Positions 1-22,532 of a stretch of DNA of 64,000 nt are shown here, piece by piece. The notes below the pieces were generated by a model that saw only the letters and a program-made list of their open reading frames with translations, was not told where the DNA came from and searched no databases. How positions within the stretch are numbered: position 1 is the stretch's first letter; every line of letters begins with the position of its first letter. The stretch is from Phaeosaccion multiseriatum (lineage: Eukaryota > Protista > Ochrophyta, other classes). The position numbers were made by a program, and so were the translations under genes. The DNA is taken from assembly GCA_965112735.1 (NCBI GenBank), contig OZ218954.1:2294001-2358000 (forward strand), given 5' to 3'.

Positions 1-832
1 GGAGGGACATCGCAACACGACAATTGTCGCGAACATCTTCACAGCTAGCTGGTTCCGCAATTTAATTGTTCAGCGGCAGAAAACGAAGTGAGTGTAAATC
101 AACAGGAGACGTAGTGCTGTCTTGCGGTACCCATGCCTGGGGGGCATGCTAGCGGGACAGAGCAGGACGGGGATGGGGACGATGCGTTCCCTGATATCTC
201 TAGTCCAGGAGTAGGTGGAGGGGATCCACCTTCTCAACAAGACATGTTTATGCTAATGCAGCAGCAGCAGCAGCAGATAGCAAACCTGACCAACTTATTG
301 GCCAAATTAGACACAGGATCAGCAGCGGGAAGCTCTGTTGTGTCAGGGGCAGGAGGCCCCGGAGGTGCGTCAAGCAGTGGCGGCACCATAGCGGGAGGGG
401 GAGGCAGCACGGGGGGCAGCAGCGGTAGCAGCAGCTCTCTGATTTGTTTGAGCTACAAGTCAAAGGTGCAAACCTTCTCTTCCGAGCTGAAAGAAGGAAC
501 AGTTGTAGAGACAGCCGTTCCTGACAGGACAGCCGTTCCTGACAATGAAAGCGAATCGGAGCGGCAGTTAGCTGCTTACGCGAAAGAACTATTGATGACC
601 GGTTTTGGTGGGGCGAGATGCCCCACTCGGTGAAAGTGGGTATTTTTAGTACCCAATTTTTTTAAAAGTGGGTATTTTTAGTACAGTACCCAATATGGAC
701 CAGTAGCGCCCCTCCCCCCCCCCCTCCTTTTTGGTGTATCTCTCCCCTCCTCCTCCAAAATATACTACGCTATGATATGACGATTTAATGGTATTACCAC
801 GATAACAATGGTATTCATATTTACAGACACAC

Positions 833-1021
833 TTAGTGTCCGTCCTCAATCATGCATGGCATACAGTAGTAGTCAAAATCGCCTTCCGCAAAACCCTTGC
901 TGTCGCAAAACTCGACGGTGCACATGTGGTGCACGAGGTTTCCACACGCTCTTTCGGATGGGCAGAGGAACAGCTTGACTTGCGAGGGCTTAGTACAGCC
1001 ATACGAGCATGTGAAGGCCAT
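833..1021 (-). CDS. PHD/RING-like Cys/His zinc finger, probably the true C-terminus of the Crypton protein
   Basis: C-x3-C...C-x5-C-x4-H-x2-C...C-x2-C (CSYGC..LCPSERAC..HHMC..YYCMPC). This frame is open back to the G6/C3/A7 run at 1151-1166. Confidence 0.7.
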   Translation of the reverse strand: MAFTCSYGCTKPSQVKLFLCPSERACGNLVHHMCTVEFCDSKGFAEGDFDYYCMPCMIEDGH

Positions 1022-1032
1022 GTCTCCCTCTC

Positions 1033-1216
1033 TCAAGCCGCCCAACGACGGCGCTGCTGACGCGGCAGCAGCGGCAGTAGCGGCCGCAGCGGCCGCATCA
1101 GAGGCAGCAGCAGAAGCAGCATCAGAAGCAGTACCAGTACCAGTACGCTGTTTTTTTGGGCCCCCCTTCCCCCACCCCTTCCTCCTCGTCCTCCTCCGGC
1201 TCCGCCTCCTCCTGTT

Positions 1217-1250
<34 letters not shown>

Positions 1251-3892
1251 TGCTGCTGCCACCTCCCTCCTCGTCGTCCTCTGCACCGCTATCACCTCCA
1301 TCCCCCTCCTTCGACTCGTCTGCACCAGTGCCACTTTCCTTCGCCCTCGCCCGCTTCGCCCGTTTTTTCGCGTCCGCCTGCTGCGCGCTCCATAAATTAT
1401 ACACGGTGGTCCACACCAGCTGATTGAAGCGGCGCTTGTGAGAATCAGAACGAGACTTGATGTCAAAGGCGTCTTTGACTGCGTCAAACATGCTTCGCGC
1501 TTCTTCAAGCGTCGGCTTGTCCTTCCAGAGCCCCTTTTCTTTCGCCGCGGATTCAATCGCACCCATCAAACAGCAAAATTTTGACATCCTTCGCTTCTCC
1601 GCCCTCCCCTGCACGTCTGCTGTCGTGAATTCTCGAAGGCGAGGAGTGCCTGTCATCCAAGCATCCCAAGCAGCGCGCACAGTGAAGCTAGGGACCTCAA
1701 AGTGCTCGGGAAGGGTATGCCACCGGCCGTTGTAGAGATACAGAGGTGGCTGATCTGCACCTGCACAAGAAGAAGAAGAGGGCGGGGCGCTGCTCGAACC
1801 CTCACCAAGGCCCAGAGTGCCTGCCTGGTGAGCCGCGAGAAGGTCGCTGAGCCCACTCTTAGAAAAGGCTGCGTCGAGGGTCGTCTGCAGGGCCCTGCTC
1901 ACACCCAGACTGGTGACAGTGCCAGAGGCCTGTGCATTCTCCTCCAGAACGTCACGGATCAGCGTCTCCAAGTCGACCTTGATCGTCTGGCCCAACACCT
2001 CAAGCTTGCCGCCTAGAGAGGCCACGCTGTCCGCCACGACTTGGAATTGCCTCAGCTGCACGACGTGGGGAGGAATCCCGGTTGCAGAAATCTCGTCCGT
2101 CTCGTCCGGATACTTCAGCACGACATGCTCTGAAAGGTCCGCCAGCAACCTTTGATCTCGGAAGAGCTGTGTCGTGAAAAGAGGGTGATTCTCCTGAAGA
2201 GTGCTGCGCAGAAAGCCGGCGTGGTACACCACACTGGCAAGACAGAATTCAGCCACCTTCCTCAATCTCAGCGGCACGTCCCTGAAGCAGCTCACAATGG
2301 CTCCCGCGAGCACGTCTTCAATGCCCTCCTTCGCTGTGCCGTCCACCTTGAGGCGCTGAAAAAAGGGAGGAAGCAATGCAAACTCCTTCGCTGAGATGTT
2401 CGCCCCGGAGGCAGCCCGGCCCACATACTGATCTGCTGCATTGATGGGGTTGAAGTAGATGCCCTGGACGCCGGGAAGAGACCATCCCATTCGAAGTTGC
2501 ACAGCAATTGGGTTGGGAGCAGCGGACGAGCCGCTTGTGACGTGCGAGGCAGCGCCCTTGCGCCCAGAATGAGTGCCGAGGTCCTCTGGAGTCAGCCCCA
2601 TGCCTTCCAAAATGGACGAGTTCGCCGCCGCCGTACGTCTGAGGAAGCCGCAATACCTATCGTACTGATTGTTGCCAGCGAACAGCGCGTTCTTCTCAAA
2701 ACCAAAGCTCAGGAGGTAAACACCAAGCGCGAGGACGGGGCAGATCTCCGGCATGATTGGATTCGCGTAGACGTGGCGAGGATGTCGGGCCTTCTCTCCC
2801 AGCTGGTCGCCCTTTTGCTTCCCAAAATAGACGCAGAGCGCGTCCCCCTTCCACTCGAGATGATCGAGACAAATCTCCACACAGTTGGTGGCGCGGCACA
2901 TCAGATTCCAGGAGAGAACGAGGAAGGGGTGGCCAAAGGCGCCCTGTCTGTGCCCGTTCTCACAGACTGCCGAGCTCAGCATTGCTGCGATGTACACAAG
3001 CGAAGGAAACAGTGGCAACCAAAGACGGCGTCAGGGCTAGGAAGTGAGTGGGGGGCAGTCAATGCATCAGCCACTTGTCTCCACCCACTCCACTAGTTTC
3101 CACTGTCCACTGACTCCACACAGCTGGGAATTTACCTTTGGCAAGAGCGCGGTAGAGAGCGAACGGCATGGGAGCCTTCCCTTCTCTGACTTCGACATTT
3201 CCCTCCTGCTTCTCTCCTGCGATCGTCCTCTTCAGCCCCTTGGTGAGCGTCGCAAGGTCGCTTTGCAATTTGCGGTGCTGCTCCTCCTGATGGTAGTCTC
3301 TGTACAGATTGAAGAGTGCAGAGCGTTTCGACTGTGCACCGGCCTTGGATAAGCCCTTCGGCCCCTTCTTGACTTCAAGCAGCCACCCGAAGAACGCGTC
3401 GGCTGTCAGCAGATGGAACAGCAAAGGGTGCGGCGCCCGAGGTGCTTGGATCAAGTGTGCCTTCACCCGCTTCGTCCACTGCGCCTCAGCCTTCTTCTTG
3501 GCCTTTGCTTGGGCTTTCGCTGCTCTCGACACCTCAGCCGGCGTCTGCTGTGCCGCTGCAGTGGCACCACCCGCTCCGCCAGGTGCGGCGGCTGCTGCGG
3601 CTGCTCCTGCTCTCCTCTGTGCTTCCTCCTCTTCCCCATCTTCCCCGTCTTCCTCCTCTTCCCCCTCCGGTGGAGCAAATGCTGTCCTGAAGTCAGGGTC
3701 CAGAAGCTCCGGGTGCTTGCGGAAGAGGTATCGGATCAGCATCGTGGAGGCGCATGCATATCCACTTCTCGAGCGTGGGGCGATGGTGTTGTTTCGGGGG
3801 TTCTGAATCTGCTGCTGCTCTGCAGTAAGCGGTGCTTCTTCCCCCTCTGCTGCTGGTGCTTCCGGAACCGTAGCAACAGCGACGTCAGCCAT
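1033..3892 (-). CDS. Crypton tyrosine recombinase with GCR1_C-like C-terminal domain (exons 3892-3136, 2984-1033; ~902 aa, or ~969 aa ending at 833 if the -1 frame at ~1151-1157 is used)
   Basis: GT-AG intron 3135-2985 joins ORFs 3059..3892 and 1033..3018 in frame. Catalytic motifs are present: WNLMCRA (R), KQKGDQ (K), GTHSGRKG (HxxR), MGW, QGIY (Y). PEHFEVPSFTVRAAWDAWMTG resembles the GCR1_C domain of CryptonS/F proteins. Confidence 0.9.
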
Positions 3893-4759
3893 GGTATACT
3901 CTGTTCTCCTGCAAATTCACGTGGGAGATGCCCCTCCCACCACTGGCATCAGCTGTTACAGCCGGGTATCGTCCGCGCAGCCGCTGCTCCTCTTACATAG
4001 CTGCACTGTGCAAATATGCTGATGCTGTGAATGAAATAAACTCCACGTGGGGAGGGGGGGGAGAATGCCCCACAACCAAAAAATATTGGATAAAAAACTT
4101 GAAAAACGAGCATTTATGGCCCATAAAATATCCAAAACAATTATTTCGTGGGGCAGGTGCCCCACTTCACGGTACTATTAGACATACGGACTACAGAGAA
4201 CTGGAGCTATTGACAGAGGAATTGGCAGCCTGGACAGAGTTGGAGAAGGCACAATCTCTCATGAAGAAAGTGAGGGAGCGCTATATAGAAGTAGAGAACT
4301 ATGGAAACGTCGAAGACTGTAGTGAAATAGCGGCCTACTGCAGTGAAATAGCGGCCTTTGGAAAGAAGGTAGCGGCTTGGGAGGACTTCGCGAGGCGGAG
4401 GTCTGAGAAGGCTTCATGGGCGGTCGAGGCCGGAGCGAGAAGCTCGAAGGAAGCGCAGATAGCAAATACTAGTGACCCTGGTAGAACCAAGATGTCTGAC
4501 AGGCAATATGGTAGGGTACTGGGGGCGGATGGTGGAACGGATGTGTTTGCTGACACACGTAATACCTGTCCCGGTGATGAGGGTGCATCCCACATCGAAG
4601 GCTGCGTTAGTAGTCTTAGGCTGGGCATACGGAAAAATGGTATGCCGGAGCCAGAAGAAGATAGGACGGATGGTGGAACGGAAGTGTCGGTCGATATTCG
4701 TAGAATCAGTCCTGATAGTGAGGGAGGGCCCCTTACTAATGAAGAGAGAGGGTTGCGTA

Positions 4760-5030
4760 CAGAGCCGGAAGAGGCAAAGCAGCAACTAGCGTGTGCAGAG
4801 CCGGAGGAGGCAGAGCAGCAACTAGAGCGTGCAGAGCCGGAGGAGGCAGAGCAGCAACTAGAGCGTGCAGAGCCGGAGGAGGCAAAGCAGCAACTAGCGT
4901 GTGCAGAGCCGGAGGAGGCAGAGCAGCAACTAGAGCGTGCAGAGCCGGAGGAGGCAAAGCAGCAACTAGCGTGTGCAGAGCCGGAGGAGGCAGAGCAGCA
5001 ATCAGTGCGTGCAGAGTCTGAGCAGACAGA
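4760..5030 (+). repeat. 42-bp coding tandem repeat (~6 copies; AEPEEAEQQLERAE-type)
   Basis: Repeated GCAGAGCCGGAGGAGGCAGAGCAGCAACTAGAGCGT units. Confidence 0.9.
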
Positions 5031-5399
5031 GCCGCAACTGTCTGAGGAGCAACACGTAGAGCCACGGCAGCGAGAGCCGGGGCAAACAGAGTCGATGGCA
5101 GCAGAGGCCGTCCAGACATACCCAGGAGTAGAAAACTCGGTAGGGGTAGGAGAAAGCCGTGGGCTTGTGGGGACTGACCTGAGTCCCACGGAGAGAGAGA
5201 GAATTGGGGAAAGCACGGAGCAGCTGGCGCAGAAGCAGACAGAAGTAGTGCAAGCAGACCGGCACGTAGAGGCAGTGGCACCGACGAGAAAATCTACCGT
5301 GGCTCAGCAGGTAGCATTGGACACTCCGCTGCCGGGCGGGAGAGTATGTGCAGCGTCGTGCAGGGACGGACCCACTCCCGAGAGGGGCAAAGACAGCAG

Positions 5400-5700
5400 A
5401 CAGGCAGAGCCAGCCGCACAGCGGGAGCGGCAGCAGGCAGAGCCAGCAGAGACACAGAGGTGTCCGACAACAGAGCAGCGGCAGGAAGAGCCGGCAGCTC
5501 AGAGAGAGACGAGGCAGGCAGAGCCAGCCGCACAGCGGGAGCGGCAGCAGGCAGAGCCAGCAGAGACACAGAGGTGTCCGACAACAGAGCAGCGGCAGGA
5601 AGAGCCGGCAGCTCAGAGAGAGACGAGGCAGGCAGAGCCAGCCGCACAGCGGGAGCGACAGCAGGCAGAGCCAGCAGAGACACAGATGTGTCCAACAGCA
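5400..5700 (+). repeat. 120-bp coding tandem repeat (~2.5 copies)
   Basis: RQAEPAAQRERQQAEPAETQRCPTTEQRQEEPAAQRET repeated. Confidence 0.9.
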
Positions 5701-6467
5701 GCACAGCAGCAGCAGAGGGCAGAGCCACAGCCGGCAGAGCCACAGCCGGCAGAGCCCCAGCAGGCAGTGTGTCGGACAGAGCGGCAGACAGCGCCGCAAG
5801 AGCGCTGCAGAGAGTGCAGCGAAGGCAGCGTACAGCACAACAGAGAGCAGAGCAGCCAGATCAGGGCAGAGCAGAGCAAGGCAGAGCAGAGCAAGGCAGA
5901 GCAGAACCTGGAACCTATGCAGGCCAGTCGTTATTGGATGTATGAGACAGCCAGGGAGGGCGACAGAGGCGCCCAGGAGACGGACTGGGATGCGGTACCT
6001 ACAGGGAAGTATGGGAGAGGTCAGCGTGGTACGAGGGTTCGGTGCGAGCAAGATCTGTATGGGAGAGGTCAACGCGGAAGCAGGACCAAGGGTGAGCAAG
6101 TTGTGCACACAAGAGGGGGACTGGATTTTGAGTCTTCCTGTAGAGGGGTATATGGGTGCTACGTTGGAGTGGCATGAAGTCTTGGGTGGACATGTGTATG
6201 GGTCACCAGCTAAGACTTGTGAGCAATTGTGGAAGCGCCTAGAGGCAAGTGGCATTGAAGACGAACAGGCTGACTGTGTGATAGCCGGGTGGGTTCGTGG
6301 GTGATGGCCGCTAGCATGGTTGTGAGCGACATAGCATTTGCAAGGAGGAATTGACTCGGCTTATGAAGAAGCCGGGCGGGGCCTGAGCATGGCGAAGCAT
6401 AGAAGCGCTTGTGTGAGTACCCGGGGGTACATTTGGAGAAGCGTTTGAAGGAAAGGGGGGACTCAAT

Positions 6468-6795: not shown

Positions 6796-6948
6796 TTTGG
6801 GTTTTAGTTTAGCTTGGGTTAGTCTTGGGATAGCTTGGGTTAGTGATTAGTGATTAGGTACTGAGGTAGCGAGGTTTTACATGCGTTTTACTTGCTATCT
6901 TAGATGTGTTGACTGTTTAGGAGAGAGTGAGTTTCGATCCAAGGGGGG

Positions 6949-7131
6949 TGTTGTGATATGATCATTATTGGGGTCTGTGGGATGCCCAATATTGATAACG
7001 TCCACACTTGGGATCTTCAACTCTGAGGCTCTGGGCCTCGTACTACGTTTATGGTTCTGTTAAAGGGCAATATATATTAGTTGACACACACAACAGCTTA
7101 CGTATCATAGTGCGGGAGGGACATCGCAACA
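6949..7131 (+). repeat. 3' LTR (183 bp) of the copia-like element
   Basis: TG...CA termini with imperfect inverted ends (TGTTGTGAT / ATCGCAACA), PPT immediately upstream, last 17 nt identical to window positions 1-17. Confidence 0.85.
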
Positions 7132-7470
7132 AGGGGTGGGGGAGGGGGGGAGCGAGGGAGGGAGCGAGGGAGGGAGCGAGGGAGCGAGGGAGGGAGAGAG
7201 AGAGGGAGAGAGAGAGGGAGAGAGGGAGGGAGGGAGGGAGGGAGGGAGGGAGAGAGGGAGGAAGAGAGGGAGGGAGGGAGGGAGGGAGGGAGGGAGGGAG
7301 AGAGGGAGGAAGAGAGGGAGGGAGCGAGGGAGGGAGGGAGCGAGGGAGCGAGGGAGCGAGGGAGCGAGGGAGCGAGGGAGCGAGGGAGGGAGGGGGCGAG
7401 GGAGCGAGGGAGGGAGGGAGGGAGGGAGCGAGGGAGGGAGGGGGCGAGGGAGCGAGGGAGGGAGGGAGGA
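7132..7470 (+). repeat. Purine-rich (GGAG/GAGCGAGG)n simple repeat
   Basis: Directly visible G/A-rich tract abutting the 3' LTR. Confidence 0.95.
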
Positions 7471-7492
7471 AGGGGCTGACGACGCGGGCCGG

Positions 7493-7579
7493 ATGGAGGA
7501 GTTGGTAGAGTTGCGTTATAGAGCCAAGCTACTTCGTCGAGACCTGCAGCAACTCGGGGTAAGTACTCTTAAGAGTAGC

Positions 7580-10295: not shown

Positions 10296-13200
10296 ATGGC
10301 CTGCTCCACGCATCATCCCTATGGTGGTAAGGCGTGTGCTCACTCTTGGCGCCTCTTTCGTGCCGCCTCCCTCCCCCACTCATCCTTATGCCCATTCTTT
10401 TCTTCTCCCCTTCTTCATTCTCTCTCCCTCTCCTCTCTCTCTCCCTCTTTCCTATCCCTCTCTCCCTCCGTCCTTATGCCCACTCTTTGCATCTTCCCTT
10501 CTTCGTACCCCCTTCTCGCTGCCTCCTTTCTCTCCCTCTCCCTCTCCCTCTCTCCGGCCATTCTCTCTCTCCCTCTCTCTCTGTCTCTGTCTGTCTGTCT
10601 CTGTCTCTGTCGTGTGCAGTGGAGCCGCAGGGCAACTCGTGGATGGTGCAGGCTACCCCCAGCTGCCGCCCCTCCGGCCTCGGCCTGCTCCACTCGCACA
10701 TGTCCGACGCCCTCATGCTCGAGTTGTTGGCGCACTTCCCAGGCCCCGATCTCGCGCGTCTTGCGGCTGTGAGTAAAGGTGAGTCTTTGATTGATGCTGA
10801 TTTTACAGGCGCGTACTGTGGGGGGCGTAGGAAGGCCGTGAAAAGGGGGAGCTAACGTTCTCCTCTGTTCTTTGTGTGCACTCTCCTTCCGCGACCCGCC
10901 GTCTCGTGTTCCCGTCAGCGTTCTACGTCTTCTCAAATTTTGACGATCTGTGGAAGAACCTGGCCCTTCTCGAGCTGCAGCTTCAGGTCAGTGGGATGTG
11001 AGGGCCGCAACATTTGAGAAACAAGGAGAATTTTTCCCCTGTTGCTCACAAGGAGGGCTGTATCTGATCGCTCGCCCTTGCCCGCATCTCAACCAAACCG
11101 CTTTGCGTAGATGGACCAGCGCAACTGCTCCAGCTCCTCTGGCGACCCTGACACAGCCCCTCCAGTGCCCCTGACTCTGCGCACTGCCGCAACCCCATGG
11201 ATGGGCACGAGCTGGAAGGAGACCTACAGGCTATACGTGCGCCACGCAGGAGCCGGCAGAACCTGTCCAGAGAGAGAGACGGGAGACGGCGAGGCCCGGG
11301 CTGCTGCTGACGCTGAAGGGACAGGGGCTGAGCCGCGCTCCCGCCCCCCCATCGCTGTGCGGGGCTTTTACTCCGACTTGCTGTATCAACCCTTCCTGTG
11401 CTCCACCTACGGCATCCAGGAGGAGTGGCTGACGCGGCGGAATGTTGACATCCGAGGCGGGATCGATGCCGAGACGTTCAGGTGAGTGAGAGGGGACACG
11501 ACCTGCGACGGTTGGTTCTCCATACAGCTAACTAACCTGGAATTTGTATCCATCATGCCATGGGGAGAGTCGCCTCTCGCCTACACACGGGTCGAACTCG
11601 TAAGCACCTGCCTGCCCGAGCACCAGGCCTTGATCAATCATTCGTTGGCATGTGTGCTGCCCTTCGCTTTCCCTCGATGATCATCCACCCTTTGACGGCA
11701 GGCGGGAGTACGAGGTGCCCAACACGCCCGTGGTGCTCACTGACTTGGTGACGCGATGGCCAGCCTTTGGAAAGTGGTCCAAGCAGCACTTCAGAGACGA
11801 GTACGGGGAGGTTCCCTTCCACGCCAACGGGTAAGGCAGGAAAGAAACATGCGCCGCACAAGGAAGGGAGGGTTGGTCGACGAAATGGGTGTGTGGTACG
11901 AAGTGACGGCTGTGTGCAGAGGGGCGGAGGGGTTTTGTTCCTTTGCGTCTAGGGAGGTGGAGGTGTTGGTCTTTCATTCTGTCACTTTATGCTCAACTCC
12001 TCCGTAAACCCATGCCACTTCCACGTATAGTCTCTCACCCTCCCTCCCCTCGCACCACTCTCCTGTTGGCCCCTTGCTCTCTCACCCTTCCTTTCACCGC
12101 CCCTGTTGGCCCCTTGCTCCTGCCGCCACTGCGCTTTTTGCTGCACAGAGTGGACTTCCTCATGAAGGACTACATTCGATACGCGGAGGAGACGAGGGAG
12201 GAACAACCCCTCTACATCTTCGACAAAAAGTTCGCCGACAAGGTGCGTAAGTAAGAAAGAGCGGCACGAAGGAAGGAAGGAAGGAAGGACGGGCGGCTGA
12301 CGTGGATCCGATCCGACGATTTATTGTATTGTGTGCGGTGGGGAGCCACTGGACTGAGACTTAAAGGAGGAAGGAAGAAAATGGGGGGCAGGGCGGTGTC
12401 TGTTTTGCTCAAAAAGTACGAGCCACGGCGCCCTCACGCAATCAATCCCTTTGAGCAAACACTTGCTCCTACCCTCCTACCCTCTTATCCCCCTCTGCCT
12501 GCTGTTGCTGCTGCTGCTGCCGCTCCTCCCTCCCTATCTATTCTCGTTAAGGCCCCCGGCCTGGCCCGAGACTACTCCGTCCCCGAGCACTTTTCTGATG
12601 ACTTGTTCAGCCAGCTGGGCCAGAGCCGCCCCGACCATCGCTGGCTCATCGTCGGCCCGACTCTGTCCGGATCCTCCTTCCACATCGACCCCAACTCAAC
12701 GGTGCGTCTTGCCTGCCCCTCTGCCCCTCTGCCCCTCTCTGCCCTGTGTCTGCCCCCCTCCACCCCCCACCTCGCGTCCTCATCTGATCTCTTGTGTCCT
12801 GTCCTCTCCTCATCTGATCTCTTGTGTCTTGTCCTCTCCTCGCCTGATCTCTTGTGTCCTGTCCTCTCCTCATCTGATCTCTTGTGTCCTGTCCTCTCCT
12901 CACCTGATCTCTTGTGTCCTGTCCTCTCCTCATCTGATCTCTTGTGTCTTGTCCTCTCCTCGCCTGATCTCTTGTGTCCTGTCCTCTCCTCATCTGATCT
13001 CTTGTGTCCTGTCCTCTCCTCACCTGATCTCTTGTGTCCTGTCCTCTCCTCACCTGATCTCTTGTGTCCTGTCCTCTCCTCATCTGATCTCTTGTTCCTC
13101 ATCTGATCTCTTGTGTCCTGTCCTCTCCTCACCTGATCTCTTGTGTCCTGTCCTCTCCTCATCTGATCTCTTCTGTCTTGTCCTGTCCTCATCTGATCTC

Positions 13201-14509
13201 TTCTGTCCTGTCCTGTCCTCATCTGATCTCTTCTCTTCTCTTCTGTCCTGTCCTGTCCTGGCTGGTGTCTTCCCCACATGACACTTCCCTCCTCTCACCA
13301 ACACCCCCTCGCACTTCACATACACATATATATATATTGTACATGCACACCCCGGGGGGGCTGTTGGTGGTGCAGTCCGCTTGGAACGCCGTCCTACAGG
13401 GCTCTAAGAAGTGGATCCTCTTCCCCCCCGGGGTCACCCCCCCGGGAGTGCACCCCTCGGCCGACGGGCTGGATCTGGCCACCCCCGTGAGCTGCATGGA
13501 GTGGTTTATGAACTTCTACGACGAGTGCCACCGTAGGCCCGCCAAGCAGAGGCCGCTGGAAGTGGTGGTGCAGGCGGGAGAGATCATCTTCGTACCCAGG
13601 GGATGGTGGCATTGTGTGCTCAACCTGTCATGGTGCGTGTGTGTGTGTGTGTGTGTGTGCGTGTGTGTGTGTGCGTGCGTGTTTGTGTGTGTGTGTGTGT
13701 GTGGGCAGATGGCGACAGCAGGGGCGTGTGGCGTGTGGCGCTTTTCGGTTTTGGGTGGCTCTGATCTCCCCCCGCTCTCTCTACATTGTACATTGTACAT
13801 TGTACATTGTACCCGAAGCTTTTGTTTCGGAGCTGGCCGAGTGGCCCACCCCTGGCGTCCCAGTCTCTTCTCTGAGGATCGGTTTCATCGGTTTCATTCT
13901 CTGGCCCTGCCTTCCCCACTCTTCTCTTACTCCTTGCTTCTTTCCAACACACCCTTTCTCTCTCTCTGTCTATCTATATATGTCTCTCTCTCTGTGTCTG
14001 TGTTTGTTTGTTATCCCTCCCCCTCTCATCGTGTGCTGCGCACCCCCTCTCTTGTGCCCGGGCTGTGCAGGACTGTGGCCATCACGCAGAACTACGTAAG
14101 TCGCGTGAATCTGCTGCCCGTACTGCGCTTCGTGCATGAGAGGAAACACCTTCTGTCCGGCCTACCCGTTGAGGAACGTTCTTCGCTGGGAACTCGCTTC
14201 GTCGAGGCGCTAAAGGCAGGCACGAGGGACGGCAAGGAGGGGAAGGGGGGGAAGGCAGCAGATGGCCATGTTGTTCACTTGGAGCCTGACGTCCGGAGGG
14301 GAGTCGAGGCAGAGCTGGACAAGTGGGAGGAGGAGGAGGGGGAGGAGGAGGAGAAGAAGAGGAAAGGCGGGGAGGCGGAGGGGAGAGGACTTTGGGCCAA
14401 GGCTAAGCGAGCGCTTGATCAAGACGAGGGCCACGAGCACATGGAAAGTAGCGAGGCCGAGGGGGGGGGGGGAGGAGGAGGCTTCAGTTTTGGCTTCGAC
14501 CTCTCCTAA
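10296..14509 (+). CDS. F-box + JmjC domain protein (JMJD6 family, Arabidopsis JMJ22-like), multi-exon
   Basis: MACSTHHPYG|VEPQGN..., F-box-like MSDALMLELLAHF..DLARLAAVSK, GFYSDLLYQPFLC, YEVPNTPVVLTD, EEQPLYIFDKKF, DHRWLIVGP..SGSSFHIDPNST|SAWNAV..GSKKW, GEIIFVPRGWWHCVLNL, AITQNYVS, C-terminal FSFGF. Fe-binding H-x-D...H is intact. Confidence 0.9.
12777..13260 (+). repeat. Intronic 30-bp minisatellite (~16 copies)
   Basis: Unit TCCTCATCTGATCTCTTGTGTCCTGTCCTC with minor variants. Confidence 0.95.
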
Positions 14510-19370: not shown

Positions 19371-19562
19371 ACTCCCCGTGGATGGGGGGGAAAGTGGGAG
19401 GGAAAAAGAAGGAGATGGAGAGGGAGAGAAAGACGTTGCAGAAATTACTTACGTACCCTTACGTGTGTGAATCAGCTTTCGTTCGCTGTGCTGTCGGCGC
19501 TCTGGCCCATTCTCCCTCTCTCTCTCTCTCCTTATCTCCCTTCAACTACATTGAGGCTTACC
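19371..19562. promoter_or_regulatory. Putative bidirectional promoter (membrane protein / SDHA)
   Basis: Divergent start codons are 192 bp apart; inferred from geometry only. Confidence 0.55.
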
Positions 19563-22532
19563 ATGCTGCGCTCCGCTGTAGGCACGGCCATTCGGAGGAG
19601 ATGTGCTCCCGGAAGGGCAGCAGTAGGCAGTTCCTCATCCTCTGGAAAACCAGTAGCTGCGGCGACCCGGCGGCGTCTGAGTTCAGCGAGCAGCAAGTAT
19701 GAGATTGTGGACCACGAGTATGATGCCGTGGTGGTGGGCGCAGGGGGCGCTGGGCTGAGAGCGGCCATGGGTTGCGCAGAGGCGGGCCTGAAGACTGCCT
19801 GTATCACCAAGCTCTTTCCCACCAGATCCCACACCGTAGCAGCACAAGGCGGTATCAACGCAGGTGAGCGACGGGCTGGGACCGTTGTTATTGCTCAGAG
19901 CTGCCGAGGGTCACGAGTGCTTACAAAGCGGGAGAATGCGAAAAGGGGGGGTGTTTGTTCCCAAGGCCGGGGCAGAGGTCTTTTCTTTCTTTTCAGGAGA
20001 CGGAATTGCTTGTCCTCCCTGGCGGTCAGCTGGCCATCTCACCAGGATCGAGTGGTCATAATCTCCACCCCTGCCTCGAATAGCAAGGTTGCTCCAGCTC
20101 CATTTTGCGAGCAGAGTACTTTATTTAATGCTTTCAGCCCCACCCCCACCCGACCCCACACACCACTCCTCGCCTCTTCACCGACACCGACACGCCTGCC
20201 ACTCTCCCCCCGCGCCTGCGCAGCGCTGGGCAACATGTCGGAAGACGACTGGCGCTGGCACATGTACGACACCGTCAAGGGCAGTGACTGGCTGGGAGAC
20301 CAGGATGCCATCCACTACATGTGCAAGGAGGCGCCAAGGGCGGTACTCGAGCTGGAGAGCTACGGCCTGCCCTTCTCGCGCACGGAAGACGGGCGCATAT
20401 ATCAACGCGCCTTTGGAGGACAGTCGCTGGAATTTGGAAAGGGGGGACAGGTGCGTGAGTGTGTGGGGAGGGAAGGGTCGCCCGGCTCACAGGTGTTACT
20501 GCTCTGCTCGGTGGTCACTCTTCCCCCTTGTACCAGGGGAGAGCTTCGCTTGTGGACGTGCGTCTCATCCGATACAACTCGCCTGCCGCCCTCTCTTCGT
20601 CCCCTACCCATACCCACCTTTTCTTTTGTCCTGCAGGCATACCGCTGCGCCGCCGCTGCCGACCGAACGGGACACGCCATGCTCCACACGCTGTACGGCC
20701 GATCGCTAGCCTTTGACACCTCCTACTTTGTGGAGTACTTCGCCTTGGACCTGCTCATGCACGAAGGCGTATGTGTTGGGGTGGTAGCCATGTGCATGGA
20801 GGACGGGAGCATTCACAGATTCAAGGTGAGGAGGGGCGAACACGAGCTTGAGGGAGTTGATTTGGTCATATGGCAAGGAAGGCAAGGAAGGGGACGGACT
20901 GGCTTCCCCACGGAAACCGGTCCGACCCAAGAAAGGAAAGAAAATGAAAGACTTGGGGCCCAAATAACTCTCTTCTTGCTGACGCTGAGGAACCCAAAAA
21001 CCCATTGTCGCACACACGCGTGCACCAGGCCGCCAACACTGTTCTGGCGACGGGCGGCTACGGCCGGACGTACTTTTCGTGTACGTCAGCGCACACATGC
21101 ACCGGAGACGGAAACGCAATGGCCATGCGGGCAGGATTACCGGTGGAGGACCCGGAGTTCGTTCAGTTCCACCCCACGGGCATCTACGGGGCTGGATGCC
21201 TCATCACGGAGGGGTGCAGAGGGGAGGGTGGCATCTTGCGGAACGGAGAGGGCGAGAGGTTCATGGAGAGGTGAGCAGGGGGGCTCTGGAGGTTGGAGTG
21301 GTATAGGATATAGAGGATATAGAATCCAACCGAGTAGGTGCTGACACTACTTCTCCGGCTTGTCGAGGGCTGGAGGTCGGAGTGGTATAGGATATAGAGG
21401 ATATAGGAATCCAACCGAGTAGGTGCTGACCACTACTTGTCCGGCTTGTCGACCCTCTAGTTCCTGGTCTCATCTCTCTCTGTCTCTCGTCCAACTCATC
21501 ACCATATGCCTCCATCCATGCATCCATCCACTTCCCCGTATGAATACACACAACAGATACGCTCCCAGTGCCAAGGACCTCGCATCCCGCGATGTGGTAT
21601 CTCGCGCCATGACCATGGAGATCTCCGAGGGACGCGGCTGCGGCGAGGCGAAGGACCACTGCTTCCTTCACCTTGACCACCTCCCACCGGATCTGTTGGC
21701 CGAGCGTCTGCCTGGCATTTCGGAGACGGCCTCCATCTTCGCGGGGGTGGACGTGACGAAGCAGCCCATTCCGGTGCTGCCCACCGTACACTACAACATG
21801 GGAGGTGTCCCTACCAACTACTTGGGCGAAGTTATCTGTCCCAAGAAACAAGCGGACGGGTCCGTCGATCACGATGCCATCGTGCCGGGCCTGTTTGCGG
21901 CGGGAGAGGCGGCGTGTGCGTCCGTGCATGGGGCGAACCGATTGGGCGCCAACTCTCTGCTCGACATTGTGGTGTTTGGAAGGGCGTGCGCTCTGCGCAT
22001 TGCGGAGATTAGTAAGCCCGGGCAGAAGGTGCCCGATGCTCCCCAGAGCGAGTTAGAGAGAGCCGTGGCTCCGTTGGACAAGCTCCGGTACGCCGACGGA
22101 AACACGTCTACCGCTGACCTCCGTCTCCATCTGCAGAAGGTGATGCAGGAGCACGCGGCCGTGTACCGCACAGATGATCTGCTGGCGGAGGGTTGCAAGA
22201 AGGTGGACAAGGTGCTGCAGCAGTCGGATGACATTAAGGTGACGGACAGGTCACTGATTTGGAACACCGACCTCATTGAGACGCTGGAGCTGCGCAACCT
22301 GCTGGCCAATGCTTCCGTCACCATGGAGGCGGCCGATAAGCGCAAGGAGTCGCGTGGGGCGCACGCACATGAAAACTACCCGGACCGGGATGACAAGGAA
22401 TGGATGAAGCACACCATGGCCTACCACGACGAAGGCAAGAAGAAGACCACCATCGACTACCGGCCCGTTCACTACGACACCTTGGACAAGAGCGAGATGG
22501 AGAGCGTCGCGCCAGTCAAGCGGGTCTATTGA
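19563..22532 (+). CDS. SDHA: Succinate dehydrogenase flavoprotein subunit, mitochondrial
   Basis: Arg/Ser/Ala-rich transit peptide, [30 protein letters not shown]|[84 protein letters not shown]-terminal RVY*. Confidence 0.99.
21286..21453 (+). repeat. ~83-bp direct duplication in an SDHA intron
   Basis: CTGGAGGT(T/C)GGAGTGGTATAGGATATAGAGGATATAG...CCAACCGAGTAGGTGCTGAC...CCGGCTTGTCGA occurs twice. Confidence 0.9.

Follow-up and report, generated by a model that had tools for sequence, protein, structure and literature searches.

The window analysed here is a stretch of 64,000 nucleotides of the ochrophyte alga Phaeosaccion multiseriatum (GenBank assembly GCA_965112735.1, contig OZ218954.1, positions 2,294,001 to 2,358,000 of the forward strand), and positions are given in its own numbering. 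Near its left end lies a long open reading frame (ORF) on the plus strand, which belongs to a repeat bordered by long terminal repeats (LTRs) and is interrupted by an element coding for a tyrosine recombinase on the minus strand (Table 1). This element, 591-4202, is in all likelihood one of 32 copies of a very young Crypton-type family, which carries a two-exon gene, moves according to the circle model of Goodwin, and was inserted here antisense to the host ORF. It displays several of the features by which a Crypton is recognized: the tyrosine recombinase residues, propagation as DNA with neither a reverse transcriptase nor another transposase, and a short terminal repeat that matches the target and is present as one copy in the empty site. 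An earlier sequence-only reading of the window had described a young Crypton-type tyrosine-recombinase transposon interrupting the ORF of an LTR-like repeat, a description that is borne out here, with different ends for the element.

Table 1. Coordinates of the Crypton, its gene and the repeat that hosts it
Feature	Position in the window	Strand	Basis
Crypton element, 3612 bp	591..4202 (589-4200 equivalent, since CT is repeated)	gene on -	flank divergence in 29 copies, seven empty sites, contig joints
CT of the left junction (the target's copy)	589..590		sole dinucleotide common to both junctions in all copies
CT at the right end of the element	4201..4202		32/32 right ends
Left CGGT, internal to the element	600..603		ATGACC on its left and the sequence on its right identical in 32/32 left ends
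Right CGGT, internal to the element	4170..4173		29 bases on its right identical in 32/32 right ends, absent from empty sites
Left subterminal palindrome, GTGGGGC-N5-GCCCCAC	608..626		identical in 32/32 left ends
Right subterminal palindrome, GTGGGGC-N4-GCCCCAC, same orientation as the left one	4148..4165		in all copies printed
Two exact 20-nt direct repeats AAAGTGGGTATTTTTAGTAC, 32 nt apart, with a further GTGGG motif	633..684		repeat family D18
Exon 1 of the recombinase gene (ATG at 3892, 252 codons and 1 base); N-terminal region, partly low-complexity	3136..3892	-	ORF; exon end from spliced contigs
Intron, 151 nt, GT..AG on the minus strand	2985..3135	-	joint 2984->3136 skipping 151 bases (CT..AC on the plus strand), runs X1 and X5
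Exon 2 in the window copy: catalytic domain, then C-terminal region conserved in homologues; premature stop at 1035-1033	1033..2984	-	ORF, 35-homologue alignment, fold
Catalytic codons	R 2895-2893, K 2814-2812, H 2571-2569, R 2562-2560, W 2484-2482, Y 2457-2455	-	alignment
T7 run (A7 on the coding strand), private 1-bp deletion, frameshift	1151..1157	-	28/29 copies have 8; alignment column 3080
Cys/His finger, PHD-like spacing C-x3-C...C-x5-C-x4-HH-x-C...C-x2-C, and stop codon	833..1024 (finger 1024-836)	-	out of frame in the window copy, in frame in most copies
Host ORF, 5' part	133..590	+	paralogues 86-96% identical
Host ORF, 3' part, rich in Q/E/A repeats, no Pfam domain	4203..6177	+	same frame as the 5' part
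Host left LTR, last 17 bases in the window	1..17 (LTR = -165..17, L031:1237-1418)	+	starts 165 bases before the window
Polypurine tract AAGGGGGG before the right LTR	6941-6948	+	sequence
Host right LTR, 183 bp, TGTT...AACA	6949..7131	+	about 99% identical to the left LTR (98.95% over a 191-bp BLAST alignment)

Ends, copies and empty sites of the element

The 67-Mb assembly of the same genome, searched with window positions 560-4215, contains 31 full-length copies of the Crypton, one 5'-truncated copy and one partial one, at 98-100% identity. The tetranucleotide CGGT, found as letters at both places where the sequence-only reading had set the boundaries of the insert, does not delimit these matches, which start about 10 bases before the left CGGT and stop about 29 bases after the right one. 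Both junctions were printed for 29 copies, which make up the junction table, and then for the remaining copies; a search with the end patterns yielded exactly 32 left and 32 right ends, with no mismatch over 33 nt in each. The left end reads CT/ATTGATGACCGGTTTTGG..., i.e. CT/ATTGATGACC, in all copies (the slash marking the junction) and the right one ...CGGTACTATTAGACATACGGACTACAGAGAACT/, with unrelated flanks beyond both. CT precedes ATTGATG at all 32 left junctions (TTTTATG in the copy L021), and all 32 right ends close on ...ACAGAGAACT without a mismatch. Variation at the left end is limited to TTTT in place of ATTG in L021, a 4-base duplication in L005, and an internal deletion in the copy on C4. 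Since the similarity of the 29 copies continues to CT/ATTGATGACC on one side and to ...CGGTACTATTAGACATACGGACTACAGAGAACT/ on the other, both CGGTs lie inside the element, and the sharing of a 4-mer by two chosen places within 3.6 kb is what chance would give.

The ends are fixed independently of the copies by sites free of the element. Paralogues exist for both host segments flanking it (100-590 and 4203-4760), and at several loci one match ends exactly where the other begins, the joints including C9:1328784/5, C4:485669/70, C14:2361799/800, C14:2692537/8, C12:1079016/7, and C14:1515070/1. Seven uninterrupted host paralogues read ...GCGAAAGAACT/GGAGCTATTG... (in short form GAAAGAACT/GGAGCTATTG), thereby joining window position 590 to 4203 with one CT kept, so that the element comprises 591-4202 and only CT is repeated. 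A joint skipping exactly 3612 bases, with 6 ambiguous letters, is also found in public contigs. In the window copy itself the repeat happens to be 6 bp long, AGAACT standing at 585-590 and 4197-4202.

What had been deduced from CGGT changes accordingly. Neither its role as a boundary nor that as a recombination core is upheld, as 29 of 29 copies extend 10 bases further to the left and 29 bases further to the right, and CT makes up the only invariant shared bases; the ends, announced as base-precise, are in fact the CTs at 589/590 and 4201/4202. Other copies of the Crypton do exist, with boundaries different from those predicted, and the seven uninterrupted host copies all depart from the predicted empty site GATGACCGGTACTATT; these are the two outcomes that the sequence-only reading had itself named as refuting it. 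The predicted circle junction is wrong, and the host ORF restored by excision would have 810 codons instead of 824. The observation that ORFs 133..633 and 3928..6177 share one plus-strand frame and are fused by the removal of 3570 bases was correct as such.

No terminal inverted or long direct repeats are present: the left end is unlike the reverse complement of the right one, and the repeat listing shows none at the termini. Inverted repeats around the crossover point were looked for, and none was convincing. The GTGGGGC/GCCCCAC palindromes situated near both ends are plausible candidates for protein-binding sites.

The recombinase gene and the state of its copies

The recombinase gene is the only one in the element, in which no reverse transcriptase- or DDE-type Pfam domain is found. 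Removal of its intron keeps the frame (G + CA = Ala), and the full spliced message is assembled in contigs of two public runs (X1 and X5) from two studies, which suggests that the gene is transcribed. As all 29 genomic copies keep the intron lost from the message, they were made from DNA and not from mRNA. The two exons were searched separately, and the fold was modelled for the catalytic domain.

In an alignment of the query with 35 homologues, at least 90% of the 36 sequences have the catalytic residues R35, K62, H143, R146, W172, and Y181 (numbered within the catalytic domain), so the R/K/HxxR/W/Y set reported as intact from the sequence is confirmed by motifs, alignment and fold. The AlphaFold model of the catalytic domain has a predicted local distance difference test score (pLDDT) of 90.4. 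Compared by means of VIA-align, it matches Flp of the yeast 2-micron plasmid with a Z-score of 15.8 (root-mean-square deviation 3.6 Å over 221 residues), Ndc10 with 14.3, the archaeal Xer protein XerA with 12.9, and Cre with 12.6. The Foldseek list consists almost wholly of tyrosine recombinases, every named recombinase at its top belonging to that family, with E-values no better than 5e-3, the clear Z-scores having come from VIA-align. A sequence word search gave 157 homologues with local identity of up to 48%, and about 27-41% where most of the query was covered, among them proteins of Phytophthora, Aphanomyces, Chaetoceros, Epithemia, and a chytrid. The names integrase and core-binding domain protein are attached to a few of these homologues, and a C48 peptidase, a domain reported for stramenopile Cryptons (PMC3212892), is present in one. 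The consensus of homologues from oomycetes and diatoms takes in the C-terminal W..W..G...RR..Q..W.T region as well. The sequence search of the PDB returned low-complexity noise only, and the GCR1_C domain gave no match even at E-values up to 10. An intact copy encodes a protein of about 969 residues, in which an N-terminal region precedes the Flp/Cre-like catalytic domain; next comes a C-terminal region that Crypton-like proteins of oomycetes and diatoms also have, and last a Cys/His finger, whose spacing resembles the C4HC3 pattern of PHD fingers, without any Pfam match.

The copies differ little from each other: pairwise identity among the 29 ranges from 98.8 to 100%, with a median of 99.4%. 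Both exons are open in 21 of them, while the remaining 8, including the window copy, have frame-breaking changes. Just two changes are private to the window copy: position 3606 is substituted, and one base is lost from the homopolymer run at 1151-1157. The latter is followed by about 38 wrong residues and the premature stop, so that exon 2 comprises 665 codons versus 728-737 in the 21 open copies, where it reaches the finger; the copy L002, for instance, reads through into it. The Crypton had been called complete, which is true of its ends and catalytic domain and does not extend to the C-terminal finger, and possibly active, which holds for the family (open copies, spliced contigs), the window copy itself being frameshifted. 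As the deletion truncates its own recombinase, the window copy would depend on the open copies and would probably need the protein supplied by them in trans. It should be added that the T7 run may be a homopolymer error of the assembly instead of a true deletion; the layout of reads in contigs left out 1095-1278 because of repeats, a segment spanning the run. A programmed -1 frameshift at the A-run was considered and rejected, since an additional A in 28 of 29 copies lets the frame continue without any shift.

Two subfamilies can be told apart by linked differences near the right end (4105-4166), AAACAATTATTTCG...CACTTCA and AAACCATAATTTCG...CACATCA, both with open copies. Four copies, L002, L003, L009, and L057 (C1:3120474, C1:3108963, C1:4962367, and C1:4957769), share the flanks ...TTATTGACTTAATAGGAATCACC.AAGAAACT/ and /GAAAGTG... 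and lie within a larger duplicated unit instead of representing separate insertions. One pair is separated by 11.5 kb and the other pair by 1.6 kb, a member of the latter being truncated at about 2.9 kb. In the case of the copy L056 (C14:2682350-2682450), the insertion point is a few bases away from TTAGGGTTAGGG, a telomere-like repeat in interstitial position.

Target choice and probable movement of the family

The target logo, built from 27-29 sites, shows A at -4 (24/27), A or T at -3 (24/27), invariant C and T (27/27), and a weak T at +6. A 6-bp repeat occurs in three of the 29 copies with both junctions tabulated: CTTTTT is present at both junctions of L021, where target sequence replaces the element's own ATTG, and CTATTG at both junctions of L024 and L027, about 0.2 such cases being expected by chance according to a rough estimate. 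These three copies hint at an exchange region that may consist of CT and the following four bases. At the host target near 4203-4214, AGAACT stands to the left of the insertion point and CTATTGA, matching the CTATTGA at the start of the element, four bases to its right; ATTG is found within 12 bases of the right flank in 6 of the 29 copies. A weak recognition of junction-like sequence is suggested.

According to the model of Goodwin, the joined ends of a Crypton circle recombine with a target sharing a short core (PMC3212892, PMC13465315). For the family described here, the recombinase would join both ends into a circle with the junction ...AGAGAACT-ATTGATGACC... (spelled also ACAGAGAACTATTGATGACC, or GGACTACAGAGAACT/ATTGATGACCGG with the joint marked), the circle would then recombine with a genomic site sharing CT, preferring A at -4 and A or T at -3, and the reverse reaction would remove the element without a scar. 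Clean excision leaving only the target has been observed for a Crypton of Chlamydomonas (PMC9977147), so scarless excision of such elements is already documented in that alga. The ends, empty sites, copies, residues, fold, and splicing were read from the data directly; the circular intermediate and present-day activity are what we infer.

Several observations weigh against this interpretation. The circle, or head-to-tail, junction ...GAGAACTATTGATG... was found neither in the assembly nor in the Logan contigs of four runs, a negative of little weight since contigs drop rare forms and cannot show rare molecules, and no joint of the 'go back' type is present in the contigs of these runs. The overlap exchanged by tyrosine recombinases usually comprises 6-8 bp, more than the 2-bp identity seen here. 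The latter is also shorter than the terminal direct repeats of 4-6 bp described for Cryptons (PMC3212892, PMC13465315). The C9 paralogue is identical to the window locus around the junction, so the empty-site joints in contigs are not assignable to that locus; fully explained by paralogues, they were not counted as its excision and give no sign of it. Moreover, the runs with spliced contigs are not recorded as RNA, their kind being given as '?' or 'DNA?'. Finally, Pfam has no match to exon 1, exon 2, the C-terminal region alone or the finger alone, and the protein was assigned to the recombinases from its motifs, its homologues and the predicted fold.

The family might no longer be mobile, its 32 copies representing a recent, finished burst and the spliced contigs read-through or residual transcription. 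This is somewhat doubtful, though it is a realistic alternative, with which the circle junction missing from assembly and contigs and the 8 of 29 copies already broken in frame, that in the window among them, would agree. It is contradicted by the perfection of all 64 ends over 33 nt, the 21 open copies, the median identity given above, and the spliced message assembled in full in two studies. The Crypton family is young and probably still mobile. A bolder proposal, which we hold to be unlikely, is that it is active today and needs identity in CT only, exchanging six bases (CT and four more) with mismatches tolerated in the last four, and that its enzyme would be a near-sequence-independent eukaryotic integrase, possibly steered by the Cys/His finger.

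A different mechanism would be required if CT were a 2-bp target-site duplication produced by a DDE-type cut-and-paste transposase encoded elsewhere, the recombinase being only cargo or serving resolution. The fixed dinucleotide at both ends indeed resembles the TA of Tc1/mariner elements, and the single CT of the empty site fits duplication as well as crossover. Nevertheless, this explanation is very improbable given that the element lacks terminal inverted repeats, that its only gene codes for a recombinase with all catalytic residues present, and that the four bases after CT are identical at both junctions in three copies (TTTT in L021, ATTG in L024 and L027), which is a better fit to strand exchange over CT and four bases.

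The remaining alternatives concern the extent of the element. All copies share the same 10 and 29 bases outside the CGGTs, and these could be a dispersed, specific target into which a shorter Crypton was inserted. There is next to no likelihood of this, because the empty paralogous sites hold none of these bases, and the flanks beyond them are unrelated, with only CT and the weak A/W preference in common, the similar flanks of L002, L003, L009, and L057 being those of one larger repeat that carries a copy; nor are there Crypton-free ATTGATGACC...ACTATTAGACATACGG... sites, the searches with the end patterns having given none beyond the 32 copies. The element bounded by CGGT (600/604-4173), with the outside bases ATTGATGAC on the left and ACTATTAGACATACGGACTACAGAGAACT on the right assigned to the host ORF, can be set aside almost entirely. 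CGGT does occur at both places and a deletion of 3570 bases does keep the frame, but the bases attributed to the host accompany the element at 31 unrelated loci and are lacking in the seven uninterrupted paralogues, and the public contigs skip 3612 bases and not 3570.

The host repeat and relation to known elements

The repeat hosting the Crypton has direct terminal repeats and a polypurine tract, and the unit between its LTRs contains neither a reverse transcriptase nor an integrase. It is a non-autonomous, multi-copy LTR-like repeat, so its earlier designation as an LTR element is reasonable only with that qualification. Both halves of its ORF are in frame 1 and 3612 = 3 x 1204, hence precise loss of the element leaves the ORF in frame with 810 codons, as had been foreseen in principle; the frame is derived from arithmetic and from natural uninterrupted paralogues. 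In the latter a single ORF runs across the junction; that of the C9 copy, which has the MPGGHASG start unchanged, encodes 747 residues, and that of the C4 copy is open over at least 799 codons. Restoration of the ORF is of little biological weight, since it belongs to a multi-copy, non-autonomous repeat. The sole Pfam match of the host ORF, to ATP_sub_h and below threshold, was rejected as due to chance. The ATG of the listed ORF 3928..6177 is part of the right end of the Crypton (3928-4202), and the filled site thus has a predicted open chimeric frame of 92 Crypton-derived and 657 host codons. The host unit is situated in GA-rich (GAGGGAGC)n simple sequence and has no clear target duplication, with GAGGA on one side and AGGGG on the other.

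The right LTR is followed (7132-7531) by a unit of about 335 bp, which recurs upstream of the left LTR at -820..-445 and -425..-168 and forms tandem arrays at many loci (C2, C5, C9, C11, C12, C13, and others) with 83-91% identity; it looks like a satellite. Further downstream lie ordinary genes, at 13178-14509 coding for a JmjC/cupin-domain protein and at 19467-22532, in two exons, for SDHA, the succinate dehydrogenase flavoprotein, whose best named matches are from ochrophyte algae (Chrysoparadoxa, diatoms, Tribonema, and Ectocarpus; 70-77% identity). Matches no closer than these agree with an ochrophyte that has poor coverage in the databases.

Among known Cryptons the closest in features are those of the CryptonS group of oomycetes and a diatom, which are devoid of GCR1_C, have a conserved C-terminal region and terminal repeats of 5-6 bp, mostly TATGG, and occur in low copy number (Kojima & Jurka 2011, PMC3212892). 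The element of P. multiseriatum shares with them a stramenopile host, a single tyrosine-recombinase gene without GCR1_C, a C-terminal region that is also conserved in proteins of Phytophthora, Aphanomyces, and diatoms, and ends that lack inverted or long terminal repeats and bear a short direct repeat. It differs in that its invariant repeat is the 2-bp CT, its termini, CT/ATTGATG... and ...AGAGAACT/ (ending GAGAACT/), contain no TATGG, its near-identical copies number 32, a Cys/His finger is fused at the C-terminus, and its protein is at most 48% identical (in local alignments) to any database protein. On this comparison of features, the element agrees with CryptonS in the absence of GCR1_C and in the C-terminal region, and departs from it in the length and sequence of the repeats.

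The first Cryptons found to be active are those of CryptonF-1_cRei in Chlamydomonas reinhardtii, which have the end CACCG and the target CAYCG, and whose copy number rises despite clean excision (Lopez-Cortegano et al. 2023, PMC9977147). They resemble the present family as active-looking algal Cryptons with an end matching a short target motif. However, they belong to the GCR1_C-bearing F group and have a 5-bp end and target, and their activity was seen directly in mutation-accumulation lines, whereas here it is deduced.

Flp and Ndc10, to which the catalytic domain is structurally closest, each align with it over about 220 residues with only about 10% sequence identity. The Crypton protein has R, K, H-x-x-R, W, and Y in common with Flp, with Trp in the same position; the substrate of Flp is a fixed 34-bp site, FRT, which has an 8-bp spacer, and Ndc10 is a non-catalytic kinetochore protein. 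The integrase of Tn1549 also matches the fold (Z about 11). Tn1549, Tn916, and CTnDOT are bacterial tyrosine-recombinase transposons with heterologous coupling sequences, which form a circular intermediate and insert into many sites with little or no identity in the overlap; they are prokaryotic, conjugative and much larger. In contrast to these, the four bases after CT at the left junction of the Crypton are almost always the element's own, and a travelling coupling sequence is not evident.

The limits of Cryptons are notoriously difficult to place, and we know of very few families in which empty sites have established them. In the present case they are determined to the base by 32 near-identical copies together with the seven empty sites in paralogues. 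The shared core thus defined, CT, is much shorter than the 4-6 bp reported for Cryptons, and near-sequence-independent integration, if true, would differ from that of the 5-6-bp-specific Cryptons described so far. We know of few Cryptons described from ochrophytes, and in this ochrophyte alga the recombinase is fused to a finger. As far as we are aware, Crypton transposition has so far been seen directly only in Chlamydomonas, and the family of P. multiseriatum, with most of its copies open and its message apparently spliced, is a good candidate for the direct study of this process.

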